Below are positions 11,368 to 61,350 of a DNA stretch of 64,000 bases, in pieces (position 1 is the stretch's first letter; the number at the start of each line of letters is the position of its first letter). The notes under the pieces are model-generated. The model was not told the origin of the DNA and ran no database searches. It was given only the letters and a program-made list of their open reading frames with translations. Location: IMG/VR virus record IMGVR_UViG_3300049793_000366, positions 372,001-436,000 of that record. One strand, given 5' to 3'. Both the position numbers and the translations under genes were made by a program.

Positions 11368-11555
11368 GAGTACTCTGTGTAAATCAAGTAGACATCTATA
11401 AGTTAAAACAGTTCAATTGGTATACATCTACCAAAACTGTGAATGATTTATATGATATACAAGGCATTGGTTTAGTACCGTGTAGCAAGTTCATCACAGA
11501 AGAAGAGTATACCGAAAGGAAAAGACAAGAAAAGATAGAATTGGTTCTTAGTTAA
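11364..11555 (+). CDS. Small hypothetical protein
   Basis: Overlapping start/stop; C-terminal RQEKIELVL motif. Confidence 0.5.
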   Translation: MRVLCVNQVDIYKLKQFNWYTSTKTVNDLYDIQGIGLVPCSKFITEEEYTERKRQEKIELVLS

Positions 11556-13407
11556 TTCTATAAATGAAATAATAAGTACCATCGTAGTTTATTTCATTCT
11601 CGGTACCATCATATCCTGACAACATATGCCCTCTACCATCAGTATCTATACAATCTTCGATATAGGCATCTTTGTCAATAAATTCCAATAGTTTCTTACC
11701 ACCATTTTCATCAGCAATTCTACCGTTCTTATCGAATGATATAAGTCCCATTTCTTCTAACTTATCTAAAGGATCATCTTTTATATCCTGATTAAGTTCT
11801 TCTACTTTAGAGTTGATATCATCATCGGAATATTCCCAATAGTAATCATTATCTTCATCTTCAATCTGAGATATGATTTCTTCTAATTCTTCTATCTTCG
11901 CAAGAGTTTCTTTGTATAGCTTAGTACCTTTCTTCAAAGTTTCTAACTTCTCATATAGAGTATCTTTATCTGCGGTAACAGTATCTAATTTTTCCTGGGC
12001 GCCTTCTTTCATTGACTTCTCAATTCCCCAATTATCTGGTTCTTCTGCAATATAATCATAGTCGTAACCATAATAATCAGCAACCTTATCACCATCTATA
12101 TGTTTACCAATTAACCATCTATCACCACCAATCCCAATATCATCTAATAGATTATCCAAATCTTCCTTAGCTGCTTCAGTTGCTTCATCATCATTACCAA
12201 TAGCCCATTCTTTACCATCATCACCAACACTGAATATTCTTAAACCATAGTGTGTGTGGTCTTGCTCTTCTAATACATAAACAGACTCACCCTCTTCTAA
12301 TTCACCCTGTTCGATTAAGAATTCCTTCATAGCATTTGGATATGGATCATCATCCCATTCACCATCTTCTTGACGTTCAGCCGCTCTGTGCGCCCTTATC
12401 TTTGCTTTCTCTGCTTTTAATTTAGCTTCGAATTCTGCCAATTTTCTTTCTCTTTCTGCTTTCTGAACTTCTTTCTCTTTTAATTCTTTCTTATTAAGAG
12501 GTCTGAATACCTTACTTGGTATTTTACAAGTTTTAATAAAATCTTCAAATATTTCTGGTCTGTTTTGTGAGTCTTGGCATTCTCTTACTGTACCATCCTT
12601 TTTGATAGTAACACCCACAATATGTAGAGATTCATGTTTTTCGTAATTTAAGTTCCAAGCGAAGTATTGAGCATTGTTTTCATTCTCAACATAGTTATTC
12701 CATTGTGACATACCAGTTTCGTTACTGATACACCATTTAAAACTACCTAATTTATAAGAGTCAACGTAGTCAGCGATTCTAGCAACAATAACTTTATTCT
12801 TCTCATTTTTATATACCACTTTACTATTATCAGTCTCTTCGATTTTGCTAATAAGCTTTTCAAAAGATTCTTTATCTTTCATCTTATTAACAAATAATTG
12901 CATATCCACCATTAAATCATCAAGGTCTTTAACTCTACTTAATGATGATGTAAATACTTTAACATCAGCTTCAGTGAATTCATTCATAATTCGCGATGCT
13001 AAGTCAATATATGGTTTTTGCTTATCTTTATCCAATTCAAATAATTCACGTCTGATATCACCCTTAATTTCATTTAAAAGCTTCTTGGCTTTTCTTTCAT
13101 ATTCAAGCTCTTCAACATCATCATTTAACTCATTAAAGTCACTATATTCGTGAACAGCTTTAGGTAGTTTATTTAATATATCCTTATTGACTTTTAATAG
13201 GCGTAGAAGTCTTCTAATATCATCAATTGATATATTATCTTCTACTAAGAATTTAGTGAACATACCCAATAGGTTTGGTGTACGACTCATTAAGTTCTTA
13301 AGTTCAATATATTCTGGGCTATTTGCATCATAGTTAGAGTCGATGATAATTTTCTTAGCTAACTGTGCGTTTTCGTTTATGTCTTTAAAACTGATTAAGT
13401 GCTTCAT
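11548..13407 (-). CDS. Hypothetical protein, possibly capsid-internal
   Basis: 619 aa; N-terminal MKHLISFKDINEN; AATATATA upstream; LGSFKWCI segment and acidic C-terminal half. Confidence 0.65.
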   Translation of the reverse strand: MKHLISFKDINENAQLAKKIIIDSNYDANSPEYIELKNLMSRTPNLLGMFTKFLVEDNISIDDIRRLLRLLKVNKDILNKLPKAVHEYSDFNELNDDVEELEYERKAKKLLNEIKGDIRRELFELDKDKQKPYIDLASRIMNEFTEADVKVFTSSLSRVKDLDDLMVDMQLFVNKMKDKESFEKLISKIEETDNSKVVYKNEKNKVIVARIADYVDSYKLGSFKWCISNETGMSQWNNYVENENNAQYFAWNLNYEKHESLHIVGVTIKKDGTVRECQDSQNRPEIFEDFIKTCKIPSKVFRPLNKKELKEKEVQKAERERKLAEFEAKLKAEKAKIRAHRAAERQEDGEWDDDPYPNAMKEFLIEQGELEEGESVYVLEEQDHTHYGLRIFSVGDDGKEWAIGNDDEATEAAKEDLDNLLDDIGIGGDRWLIGKHIDGDKVADYYGYDYDYIAEEPDNWGIEKSMKEGAQEKLDTVTADKDTLYEKLETLKKGTKLYKETLAKIEELEEIISQIEDEDNDYYWEYSDDDINSKVEELNQDIKDDPLDKLEEMGLISFDKNGRIADENGGKKLLEFIDKDAYIEDCIDTDGRGHMLSGYDGTENEINYDGTYYFIYRIN

Positions 13408-13448: not shown

Positions 13449-13480
13449 TTTGGATTATATGAATTTAATCCGTATATTTG
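13449..13480 (+). promoter_or_regulatory. Bacteroidota-type promoter for the RNase P RNA
   Basis: TTTG 13449-13452, TATATTTG 13473-13480. Confidence 0.75.
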
Positions 13481-13493
13481 TTATGTTAAATTA

Positions 13494-13692
13494 TGATAGA
13501 CCGAAGGACGCATAGCACTACGGTGAGGAAGTTCAACACACCGACCTTCATGTAGGAGACCTAATCAGTCGCTTTGACTACACGGTGAAACTCAAAACAG
13601 GTTAGCGCAAGACAGGTCGCAATGATACCGAGGTGGAGGACAATAGACAAATTATGTGATAAAACAAAAAGTTGACTACACTTGGTTTATCA
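13494..13692 (+). ncRNA. rnpB: Minimal RNase P RNA (about 200 nt)
   Basis: P1 TGATAGACCGAAG/CTTGGTTTATCA; CR-I-like GAGGAAGTTCAAC; CR-V-like ACAAAAAGTTGACTAC. These form P4 AGU[U]CAAC/GUUGACU with the bulged U. CACGGTGAAACTC and GCAAGAC also resemble conserved regions. Confidence 0.8.
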
Positions 13693-13722: not shown

Positions 13723-14136
13723 ATGACATTAAAAGAGAAAATTGCCCAGGACTACATCGTTGCTTTTAAAGCAAGAGAGCCAAAGAAGAATACTTTAGGC
13801 TTCATTAAATCGGCTATCGATACTGCTGAGAAAAATGGTGGTAAATCAACAGATGAAGAAGTACTTGAAATCTTAATTAAGATGGAGAAAAACTTGAAAG
13901 ATGTTTTAGTGAATGAAGCTAAAGCTGGTGTATCATCTGATGCTACAAATGCTGAGATTGAAGTAATTCAATCTTATTTGCCTAAGAAATTATCAGAAGA
14001 TGAAATCAAGGCAGAAATTCAAAATGCTATCAATGGTGGTGCTAATAACATTGGTGCTATTATGGCTTTGTTTAAAGACAAACCAGTAGATAGAAAAGTA
14101 GTTTCAACTATTGCTAATTCAATGCTTGCTAAATAA
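13723..14136 (+). CDS. GatB/YqeY domain protein
   Basis: LKEKIAQDYIVAFKARE...EIEVIQSYLPKKLSEDEI...IGAIM. Confidence 0.85.
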   Translation: MTLKEKIAQDYIVAFKAREPKKNTLGFIKSAIDTAEKNGGKSTDEEVLEILIKMEKNLKDVLVNEAKAGVSSDATNAEIEVIQSYLPKKLSEDEIKAEIQNAINGGANNIGAIMALFKDKPVDRKVVSTIANSMLAK

Positions 14137-14519: not shown

Positions 14520-14847
14520 TGCTTTGGACTGATTATTGTTTATCAATATAAAATTGGTCACAGACGATAATCCAGCCCAAAAAGAGAATAAAATCTCAAG
14601 AATTAAGCAATTTTGAATAAAATAAATGTTAAATTAATCAATATGGTAATTATGTAACATTCAGTGGACGCGAGAGATAGAAAGGCTTCCAAGTATTTTT
14701 AGTCCAGTTTTAAACAACTATATGTTGAAAACTTAAAAAAATCCTTGATTATTGTAAAATTAGCCGTATCTTTACATCCAAGAATTTACAAATCGTAAAA
14801 GGAGAAGGTTGATGCCTATAAGTTTAACCAGAATTAAAAAAAAGAAA

Positions 14848-15783
14848 ATGAGTAAAGTAAAAGAGTCGCCAGATAAAAATGGCAACGGAAAACACGGTAA
14901 CGACAACGCTAACGGGCATCATAAAGCCGAAGGCCACTCGACTGCTGAAGCATCATCTTCATCATCAAAAACCGAAAAAGAAAAGTCACCCGCAAAACAA
15001 CATAGGAAAACAGAGGTGACTTCGAAGCTTAAAGAGCGTAAGCCAAGCTCTGATAAGTTAGGCAGTTTTTCCGTTAAGGATTTAGAATCCATGACACCAC
15101 AGCAAAGATGGCATCTTAGAAAACGTCTTGAAGCTCTAACGGGTAGCAAGAAGTCAACAAGCAAAGCCAAGGCTACAACCGGAAACGGTAAAAGAGGTCG
15201 CCCTGCTATCGGTGATGGTATGACACCACAACAAAGATGGCACCTGAAAAAGAAACAGGAAAAGGTAGCACTTCAAAAGAAGACAGGTCAGCCTGCTCCT
15301 AAAAGAGGTCGTCCTGCCGCTCCAATCAAAAGTGCCGCTGACTTAACACGTCAGAAAAGATGGCATCTTAAGCAGAAGCTTGAGAAATTGGAGAAAATGA
15401 AGAAAAAAGGCGCAATCTCTAAAGAAGTCAGAGCCGACATTCGCAACATCCGCGCATTACTTGACGAAAGCTACAAATCAGCTAAGACAGTAAAGGCTAA
15501 CAAAGCTAACAAAAGGATCTCTAATAAAGACCTTGCTTCAATGACACCTCAGAAACGTTGGTATCACAAGCACAAAGCTGACTTAGCTAAGACCAGAAAA
15601 ACAGGTAAGAAAACTACCAAAGTTCACAAGGTAACTGCTAAAGTTGCTTCTGGTAAGCGAATCTCAAACAGTGACTTAAAAACTGTTACTACTAAAAAAG
15701 TTAAAACAACTAAGAAACCAACAGCAAGGCTTTCCAACAAACAGTTGAAAAACATGAGCAAATTGGACAAAGTTTTATCTTAA
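14848..15783 (+). CDS. Highly basic nucleoid-like protein with AT-hook-like motifs and MTPQQRWH repeats (start moved to ATG 14848)
   Basis: Lys-rich; two KRGRPA motifs; four (M/L)T(P/R)Q(Q/K)RW(H/Y) repeats. Confidence 0.65.
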   Translation: MSKVKESPDKNGNGKHGNDNANGHHKAEGHSTAEASSSSSKTEKEKSPAKQHRKTEVTSKLKERKPSSDKLGSFSVKDLESMTPQQRWHLRKRLEALTGSKKSTSKAKATTGNGKRGRPAIGDGMTPQQRWHLKKKQEKVALQKKTGQPAPKRGRPAAPIKSAADLTRQKRWHLKQKLEKLEKMKKKGAISKEVRADIRNIRALLDESYKSAKTVKANKANKRISNKDLASMTPQKRWYHKHKADLAKTRKTGKKTTKVHKVTAKVASGKRISNSDLKTVTTKKVKTTKKPTARLSNKQLKNMSKLDKVLS

Positions 15784-35697: not shown

Positions 35698-35771
35698 TGA
35701 GGGGTAGCTCAGTGGTAAGAGCGCCGGGACGGAAAACCCGGAGGTCGTTGGTTCGAATCTAACCCCCTCTA
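35698..35771 (+). tRNA. Initiator-like tRNA body with an 8-nt anticodon loop ACGGAAAA
   Basis: U1-U72 mismatch, GAGGGG/CCCCTC, CCGGG/CCCGG stem, AGGTC variable loop. Confidence 0.6.
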
Positions 35772-35779
35772 CAAAGAAT

Positions 35780-60518: not shown

Positions 60519-61272
60519 TTGGGCAGTATAGTGTCCTACACAAATCTTCGGGTTTGTGTGAAAATAAAGCTGGTAACAGTCTATAAAGCAAACGTAGAGT
60601 TTGCGACTTCTTCACGGGAGTTTAACTATAAAATACTTAGTATGTCTTTGATGGACGAATGTTCAATGAGATATCATCATCCAACTATGGTGATTGCGTC
60701 AGAAATGATTACAAGAAAGGTAGGGTATTATGTGCGAAATGTCCAAACATTAGTGCGTGTGCTATCTGATTAAGTTATACAACGTATAGTTTATATTCGC
60801 AAGGGTATTTATTATACATGGGCGACTGAAGCAGACGTGAGCTGGAAACTCACAGAAGGGCGTTTAGTATTTTGTTCTCAAAAGGAACGAAGCTATACCA
60901 CACAGGCGTCCTTCATACAAATAGTTGTTATCTAACATGATTTTGAAATATCAAAAAAGCAAAATCTGTGTGGCGCTGGAGTCGAAAGGTCTCTAATTCC
61001 ATCCGTTGCGAAACGAAGATGGAGTCTAATATCCCGCAAGGATATGGATTTAGCTAAGAAAAATCTAGTGGGCGCAACCCTTAGTCAGTTCGCAAGACTG
61101 AATAGACAGAGTAGCAGTTGAGTAGACAAACTGGTCAAACAGTTCTAGCGATACGAGTGATTACCGTAAGGAATCGAGACTGACAGAATACTTATCGCAA
61201 GGTGAGTGGATAATGAGAGAACCAATAATGCTCAGAAAGATTTGTCGACCAAAGCTATAATCTCAAGCTTTT
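60519..61272 (+). ncRNA. Large ornate ncRNA, GOLLD-like (about 750 nt)
   Basis: Five CGCAA-loop hairpins, UUCG/GCGA/GAAA loops, long-range helices (GAAGGGCG/CGTCCTTC, CACACAG/CTGTGTG); tRNA-flanked phage context; family call is from memory. Confidence 0.6.
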
Positions 61273-61276
61273 TTAC

Positions 61277-61350
61277 GGCGTGTTCGTCTATCGGAAGGAC
61301 GCTACCCCATTTCAGGGTAGAAACGTATGGTTCGAATCCTGCACACGCTA
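61277..61350 (+). tRNA. Glu-like tRNA-like RNA, near copy of 59987-60060
   Basis: Identical from GGAAGGAC through the T arm; acceptor GGCGTGT/ACACGCT co-varies. Confidence 0.6.

Follow-up and report, generated by a model that had tools for sequence, protein, structure and literature searches.

Few ribozymes are universal; RNase P RNA is among them, and to our knowledge its gene has so far been treated as strictly cellular or organellar. The question raised by positions 13494-13692 (+ strand) of the phage DNA analysed here is whether this short segment encodes such an RNA and, if it does, what the RNA would do. We refer to the whole 64,000-nt stretch (positions 372,001 to 436,000 of IMG/VR record IMGVR_UViG_3300049793_000366) as the window. 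The 199-nt gene, whose ends are closed by an 11-bp P1 helix, occupies part of the 315 nt that separate a 619-aa ORF running leftward (11548-13407) from a YqeY-like gene running rightward (13723-14136). The first-pass annotation had read it as an RNase P RNA of a phage, very small at about 200 nt. Its coordinates proved exact to the base, with P1 formed by 13494-13504 and 13682-13692 and our own covariance model, R1, matching 13493-13692 (177.6 bits, E 1e-40). The identification also held, with Rfam matches that are below threshold but specific and covariation in every RNase P helix, the P4 and P6 pseudoknots included.

The RNase P model check that had been set beforehand was negative at the gathering threshold and positive in E-value mode. 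When the whole window was searched with Rfam at curated gathering thresholds, 38 tRNAs and a GOLLD RNA were reported and no RNase P RNA. In E-value mode the RNaseP_arch model matched 13496-13690 at 29.7 bits with an E-value of 8.8e-7, which applies to the 551 nt searched and scales to about 1e-4 for the whole window; the Rfam cut-off for a match to this model is 84 bits. The alignment runs end to end (model positions 1-288), with approximately 117 model positions deleted at the place of the specificity domain (S-domain). The single-sequence minimum free energy fold was no better than that of shuffled sequences on either strand (z = -1.0 and +0.8), which is normal for a pseudoknotted RNA, and the support comes from comparative data. 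R1 scored 7.7 bits on E. coli rnpB, which is not significant, and megablast of the 4.7-kb neighbourhood against phage genomes gave zero matches.

The features of the locus are listed below, with RNA position 1 corresponding to window position 13494.

13449-13480 (+): putative Bacteroidota-type promoter, read from the sequence; TTTG (13449-13452), a 20-nt spacer and TATATTTG (13473-13480)
13494-13692 (+): whole RNA gene, predicted miniature RNase P RNA; Rfam E-value match, R1 match at 177.6 bits, covariation
13494-13504 (+): P1 5' strand, pairing with 13682-13692 (RNA 1-11 with 189-199), 11 bp; 11/11 pairs change on both sides across the family
13509-13515 (+): P2 5' strand, pairing with 13652-13658 (RNA 16-22 with 159-165); 97.7-98.2% paired, double changes at 6/7 pairs
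13516-13525 (+): minimal P3 hairpin CAC-UACG-GUG, 3 bp (RNA 23-32); 97-99% paired, CAC/GUG replaced by CUC/GAG or CUG/CAG
13525-13534 (+): CR-I, GAGGAAGUUC (RNA 32-41), E. coli GAGGAAAGUC; at least 90% conserved in the set retrieved without CR-I
13530-13537 (+): P4 5' strand, pairing with 13671-13677 as a pseudoknot with P2, bulged U13533; outside R1, 92.5-95.3% paired
13539-13542 (+): P5 5' strand, pairing with 13584-13587 (RNA 46-49 with 91-94); 97.9-99.5% paired
13544-13547 (+): P6 5' strand, pairing with L17 bases 13614-13617 (RNA 51-54 with 121-124) as a pseudoknot; outside R1, paired in 96% (alignment A5) and 90-100% (alignment A8)
13551-13582 (+): remnant S-domain, 32 nt, consisting of P7, an asymmetric internal loop and a 3-bp P9-like stem; from the family alignments
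13588-13593 (+): J5/15 (AAA) and P15 5' strand (CUC), the latter pairing with 13636-13638 (RNA 98-100 with 143-145); from comparison with E. coli and the family alignment
13600-13629 (+): P16 (13600-13602 with 13627-13629) and P17 (13605-13607 with 13618-13620), L17 holding the P6 3' strand; family covariation
13632-13634 (+): GGU in J16/15 (L15), RNA 139-141; invariant in alignment A2, which was retrieved without the GGU block
13644-13652 (+): CR-IV, UAGACAAAU (RNA 151-159), E. coli UAGAUGAAU; conserved across the family
13664-13677 (+): CR-V (ACAAAAA, RNA 171-177) and P4 3' strand (GUUGACU); conserved across the family, E. coli CR-V being ACAGAAC
19760-61350 (+): 39 tRNA genes in several arrays, presumed substrates; 38 from Rfam and a further tRNA scan

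The catalytic-domain elements that had been recognisable at first reading make up an intact catalytic domain, in which CR-I, J5/15, L15, CR-IV and CR-V have the same order and the same structural places as in E. coli M1 RNA. In the window copy P4 is formed by A37-U184, G38-C183, U39-A182, the bulged U40, and C41-G181 to C44-G178. Across the family this helix has double changes at 5/7 pairs and approximately 25 distinct versions, and its bulged U is invariant. P6 is found as ACCU/AGGU, CUUU/GAAG and UUGU/GCAA, while P17 joins RNA positions 112-114 to 125-127; P15 and P17 are paired in 90-98%. The P6-L17 pseudoknot is a hallmark of type A, and the GGU in L15 corresponds to the site that pairs with the 3' end of the tRNA (C74) in type-A RNase P. 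The window copy has no P18, P8 or P10-P14, two P4 positions within its CR-I (the equivalents of A67 and G68) do not follow the bacterial consensus, and the copy departs from its own family in J5/15 (GAAA for the usual GCAA, A for C) and in CR-V (ACAAAA for ACAGAA). A drawn pair, C105-G137 (C13598-G13630), is specific to the window copy, being unpaired in 45 of 49 relatives, and lacks the support of the family. Judged from its sequence, the window RNA is an RNase P RNA by all the structural features compared; its S-domain and its scores set it outside type A as defined by the models, and it is not of the archaeal type T either.

More than 130 homologous loci, 185-369 nt long, were found on huge-phage and metagenome contigs. 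Patterns that combined CR-I with the hairpin hit 6 viral loci, 51 metagenome loci and 1 genome locus, and a scan for the hairpin alone gave 29 viral loci, approximately half of which are chance matches. The lone match among species-representative genomes in the narrow-pattern scan (L201, on an 8-kb MAG contig) is not recognised by R1 and was treated as chance; beyond what this narrow pattern covers, the family may also have members, or its origin, in cells. A loose pattern of CR-I plus GAGACC gave 119 viral loci; all 100 that were tested were chance matches (0 R1 matches), and these 100 loci were reused as a negative control. R1 itself was built from 10 compact members as seed (202 positions, 43 bp), using the RNase P structure without pseudoknots. 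It found 60 matches (70-219 bits) in the loci of the first scans and none in 0.92 Mb of unrelated viral DNA. Since the first scans had demanded the hairpin sequence, a second scan was made with the 3'-half blocks only (J5/15, L15 and CR-IV). This yielded 82 viral loci, nearly all of them new and on contigs of up to 527 kb, and R1 matched 72 of 80 new loci (26-192 bits, 185-369 nt). The median length of 91 non-redundant loci is 229 nt, with 42 of them no longer than 215 nt, and about half of the family has a P18 bearing a GNRA loop. In the annotated phage collection, relatives of the RNA are found only in the huge-phage genomes LR756502.1 and LR756501/3 (642-kb and 735-kb, metagenomic).

The only ribozyme models that match members of the family in Rfam E-value mode, and do so over their full length, are RNaseP_bact_a, with a best score of 56.2 bits (E 7.5e-15, L171), and RNaseP_arch, with up to 45.6 bits; further scores in this mode are 32.4 bits for L001 and 46.8 and 38.6 bits for other members. 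The gathering score is reached by no family member, including those of 300-369 nt. Because none of these genes passes the Rfam thresholds they are absent from current phage annotations, which exposes a blind spot in annotation.

Covariation was measured in two separately retrieved alignments, A5 with 47 distinct sequences and A8 with 49, the latter collected by a search that used neither the hairpin nor CR-I; both contain the window copy. Standard pairs occupy 92.2% of the cells in A5 and 93.3% in A8, versus 63.6% and 63.2% in shuffles. The covariation score is 0.691 in A5 and 0.739 in A8, versus 0.183 and 0.193 in shuffles, none of the 500 shuffles of either alignment reaching the observed value, and sliding the 3' partners by 1-3 columns gave scores of 0.08-0.11 (A5) and 0.07-0.10 (A8). 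Both alignments have 45 of 54 pairs changed on both sides. The figures for nested helices are somewhat inflated, the alignments having been fitted to those helices; P4 and P6 are not in the model. These two long-range pairings are the signature of the RNase P core and of the type-A P15-17 arm. The homology of these RNAs, their architecture and purifying selection on their structure are established here.

The S-domain, most of which had been thought absent, is nearly so, with some 40 nt (about 35-40) between the P5 strands of the window RNA versus 154 nt in E. coli. The 32-nt remnant is built of P7 (13551-13555 with 13578-13582, RNA 58-62 with 85-89), an internal loop GA / G-C-U-U-U-G-A (13556-13557 and 13571-13577) and a P9-like stem of 3 bp (13558-13560 with 13568-13570) that carries the 7-nt loop CUAAUCA. 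In the set retrieved independently of the hairpin, conservation is 90% or more at the junction GGAG(stem)...(stem)CG-N-U-NNN-AC, while the apical stem, which co-varies, and its loop are variable, with many GNRA tetraloops, some long stems and a few inserts of 60-140 nt. The hairpin loop GGAGACCUAAnCnGUCG, a candidate for the most conserved element, turned out to be an ascertainment artefact, the hairpin-independent scan having only the flanking internal loop conserved. In this internal loop (U-N-N-Y-A) 85% of copies have U at position 1, most have a pyrimidine at position 4, and all have at position 5 the A that the parse required. Assignment as a classical T-loop was considered and is not established, position 4 being mostly a pyrimidine. 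By analogy with the archaeal type T model (PMC13462272), the conserved internal loop may still contact the tRNA elbow. Members of 300-369 nt have large inserts at the S-domain position (L204 3425-3793, L237 118-433 and L227 3020-3319), but these are not canonical S-domains, as such members still remain under 50 bits with models of bacterial RNase P.

Among known RNase P RNAs, the bacterial type A (RF00010; E. coli M1 RNA, T. maritima P RNA) shares with the phage RNA P1-P5, a P4 with bulged U formed from CR-I and CR-V, CR-IV, J5/15, the P15-P16-P17 arm with its GGU loop, the L17-P6 pseudoknot and the order of all these elements. The phage RNA differs in being phage-borne, not cellular, and in its size, 199 nt versus 377 nt. 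It is without P8, P10-P14 and CR-II/CR-III and, in this copy, without P18, its P3 has only 3 bp and a UACG loop, and two of its P4 base pairs are off consensus. Scores of the family are 24-56 bits, whereas the RF00010 gathering score is 100.

The S-domain of archaeal type T RNAs is reduced to one stem, from which a loop bulges out between P7 and a hairpin resembling P9, and its single T-loop is modelled against the tRNA elbow (PMC13462272). Type T resembles the phage RNA as a natural enzyme of approximately 200 nt that has a type-A-like C-domain including P15-17/P6, a single-stem S-domain and no CR-II (PMC13462272), and both families escaped standard searches. Type T is archaeal, however, with Pop5, Rpp30, Rpp29 and L7Ae and a K-turn in P16/17, whereas the phage RNA belongs to a phage replicon with Bacteroidota-type promoters, and the Pyrobaculum UAAAA fits the T-loop consensus better than the phage U-N-N-Y-A. 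In Rfam clan competition the best models are RNaseP_arch or RNaseP_bact_a, not type T. Because the best scores are with bacterial or generic archaeal models and the phages have Bacteroidota-type promoters, the likeness to type T is convergence in design, not shared descent. Engineered bacterial RNAs consisting of the C-domain only (e.g. Eco CP RPR) cleave at the correct site without an S-domain (PMC5839562). Those are laboratory deletions of reduced efficiency, whereas the phage RNAs are natural, under selection and equipped with a conserved mini-domain.

The genes of this family are linked to tRNA genes. Thirty of the 91 RNA genes lie no more than 20 nt from a tRNA and 48 lie within 1 kb of one, all 48 on the same strand, and tRNA density is 9.5 per 10 kb at family loci versus 0.17 at the control viral loci. 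Only 0-8 nt separate the RNA from tRNAs in L015, L155, L161, L165, L174 and L180, so tRNA processing would make the ends of the RNA in these cases. The window copy lies 6 kb from the nearest tRNA. The TATATTTG element of its putative promoter ends 13 nt before P1. Of 43 family loci, 17 have TAnnTTTG no more than 60 nt upstream, versus approximately 4% expected, and in most of the 17 a TTTG precedes it by 19-20 nt; the element is common in members that have no preceding tRNA. This consensus (TAnnTTTG as -7 element, and TTTG) is that of Bacteroides promoters. A scan for sigma-70 promoters and terminators gave nothing above chance. Intrinsic terminators are present 3' of some members; the window copy has none before the YqeY-like gene (13723-14136), which begins 30 nt downstream of the RNA, and transcription may read through into that gene.

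Across 43 loci the RNA has no constant protein-coding neighbour, and a YqeY-like gene adjoins it in 3 loci only; besides the window copy, the RNAs of L188 and L196 have such a neighbour. ORFs of the window match 64 PHROG families and include a translation island with about 12 aminoacyl-tRNA synthetase domains, IF3, Rnl1- and Rnl2-type (T4-like) RNA ligases and YqeY. The window also encodes a cyclic-phosphate-processing receiver domain and NUDIX and HNH genes. A 324-aa ORF at 14809-15783 (+) is very rich in Lys and Arg and has four repeats of MTPQ(Q/K)RWHL(K/R)K; it has no Pfam match and is not conserved beside the RNA in other loci, and from its composition the protein might bind nucleic acid. 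A full-length GOLLD RNA lies at 60855-61269 (232 bits, E 1e-64), and 8 nt later a tRNA gene starts (61277-61350). GOLLD (RF02032) is another large structured RNA of huge phages, and tRNAs, tmRNA and aminoacyl-tRNA synthetases occur in Mahaphage-clade genomes (PMC7162821); the setting is the same, that of huge phages with tRNA arrays and translation genes whose predicted hosts are Bacteroidetes. The huge-phage clade of the relatives LR756501-3 is predicted to replicate in Bacteroidetes (PMC7162821).

The tRNAs of the window are the presumed substrates. It had been suggested that loss of T-loop recognition would let the RNA process atypical tRNAs; this was not borne out, for the remnant domain keeps a conserved internal loop and canonical TTCRANN T-loops are present in 35 of the 38 tRNAs of the Rfam set, so that there is no sign that these tRNAs need an elbow-blind enzyme. 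CCA is encoded in only 1 of the 38, and the base at position 74 is C in all 38, mostly in a CAAA trailer. Among 841 tRNAs at family loci position 74 is C in 73%, versus 21% of only 19 tRNAs at control loci. A conserved contact between enzyme and substrate at the GGU loop would fit this pattern, but 3'-end processing or CCA addition could explain it just as well. Many isoacceptors in the window are duplicated, and several of the tRNAs for Lys, Gln and Gly reach an unusual length (82-88 nt). An anticodon loop of 8 nt (ARAGORN anticodon 'ggaa') marks the tRNA at 35698-35772, which could be of the frameshift-suppressor type.

A search of the window ORFs of 63-200 aa with Pfam PF00825 (RnpA) gave no match at an E-value below approximately 0.004, so the first-pass annotation's statement that the window has no rnpA holds at Pfam sensitivity, within 64 of 508 kb. 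In LR756501-3, tblastn with E. coli and Firmicutes-like RnpA at E-values up to 1, a weak test, found none. Since rnpA was found neither in the window (64 of 508 kb) nor in LR756501-3, use of the host protein is the simplest inference, and the RNA probably works with host RnpA. Matches to rnpA in 'phage' records (MG065691.1, MG065686.1, OR850986.1 and the MT83xxxx series) are 97-99% identical to E. coli or are short unverified fragments, and look like bacterial contamination or mis-binning, not phage-encoded RnpA.

We consider it highly probable that 13494-13692 (+) is a phage RNase P RNA derived from type A, with a full catalytic core and a 32-nt S-domain, that takes part in 5' maturation of pre-tRNAs, probably with host RnpA. 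Catalysis, substrate and protein partner are what we infer from the comparisons above, and the most likely function, as far as genes and sequences indicate it, would be 5' maturation of the phage's many tRNAs. The RNA would be made early, from its own putative Bacteroidota-type promoter or, in many relatives, as part of tRNA operons, and would fold into a catalytic core of type A, with the P4 and P6 pseudoknots lending stability. Pre-tRNA would be bound through J5/15 (position -1) and the GGU loop (N73 and C74), possibly also through the internal loop (elbow), and Mg2+ bound in P4 would allow the leader to be hydrolysed at +1 by the usual metal-ion mechanism, probably in a holoenzyme with host RnpA. 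That this is feasible without a full S-domain is indicated by the activity of isolated bacterial C-domains (PMC5839562) and by the natural type T enzymes (PMC13462272). A fuller picture, which we find plausible without quite favouring it, is that of a natural minimal RNase P ribozyme of Bacteroidota huge phages, in which a stub of approximately 30 nt, convergent with type T, would sense the elbow. Such an RNA would be co-transcribed with tRNA arrays, have its ends cut by tRNA processing, and be tuned to packed pre-tRNAs that are without CCA and keep C74. During infection the phage would then either not depend on host RNase P for its tRNA supply or override it, and among RNase P RNAs this one would be the first encoded by a virus and the smallest natural one of bacterial type.

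The same RNA could be catalytic without host RnpA, using an unrecognised phage protein or acting essentially as RNA alone, so that tRNA maturation would be independent of the host. The unusually complete translation and tRNA toolkit of the phage would suit this, and many neighbouring ORFs are without a known family, the basic repeat protein at 14809-15783 among them; bacterial P RNAs and isolated C-domains are, moreover, ribozymes in vitro (PMC5839562). We nevertheless regard it as unlikely, because no protein is consistently found beside the RNA in the 43 loci and the regions that contact RnpA in bacteria (CR-I/IV/V and P2-P4) are its best conserved parts. Without protein, bacterial P RNA is active only at non-physiological salt. 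We give very little credence to a decoy, an RNase P RNA mimic that would titrate host RnpA or compete for pre-tRNAs and so cripple host tRNA maturation. A decoy would agree with the retention of the protein-binding core, the loss of the substrate-affinity domain and the failure to detect rnpA in the window and in LR756501-3. However, elements that serve only docking or chemistry (the bulged U, J5/15, the GGU of L15 and the P6/L17 pseudoknot) are conserved or co-vary, and the gene lies within the phage's own arrays of tRNAs, whose maturation itself calls for RNase P.

Loss of the S-domain, the part that measures the acceptor and T-arm, might instead have retargeted an RNase P-derived ribozyme to substrates other than tRNAs, such as phage mRNAs, the GOLLD RNA or tRNA-like structures. 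Model hairpins are cleaved by enzymes consisting only of a C-domain (PMC5839562), no tRNA adjoins the window copy, and the window contains a GOLLD RNA. This reading deserves scarcely any credence, as the family as a whole is juxtaposed on the same strand with canonical tRNA genes, the T-arms of the window tRNAs are canonical, and an internal loop is conserved where type T is modelled as touching the tRNA elbow (PMC13462272). Scores below all Rfam thresholds and the few departures of the window copy from the family consensus are what a functionless, decaying fragment of a captured host rnpB, or an assembly chimera, might also produce. The covariation effectively refutes such a relic, leaving it practically no probability: helices are maintained by compensatory changes at more than 130 loci. 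Some members have their own promoters and terminators, an identical copy is present in IMG/VR (L004, UViG_3300049793_000366, 507,910 bp), and homologues occur in manually curated complete huge-phage genomes.

No virus-encoded RNase P RNA is described in the full-text literature searched, which is mostly that outside subscription journals, or in the available text of the main huge- and jumbo-phage surveys, and the family of phage RNase P RNAs is apparently undescribed. If these RNAs are active, they would add 5' maturation, the last missing step, to a huge-phage translation toolkit that holds tRNAs, synthetases, initiation factors and ribosomal proteins. The family would amount to more than 130 natural experiments in shrinking bacterial RNase P RNA, down to approximately 190 nt. 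It bears on the long-standing question of what the S-domain is needed for, and its compact RNAs could serve structural and engineering work as a scaffold.

In some loci a second RNase P-like unit lies in tandem with the first. The upstream unit of L020 (3410-3540, - strand) has CR-I, the mini-domain, P15-17, CR-IV and both P2 strands, and is without CR-V and the P4 3' strand. In L162 (1692-1897 and 1912-2123, - strand) a further full-length match, weak at 44.7 bits, is separated from the first by 15 nt, and tandem second units are also present on L160, L173 and L179.
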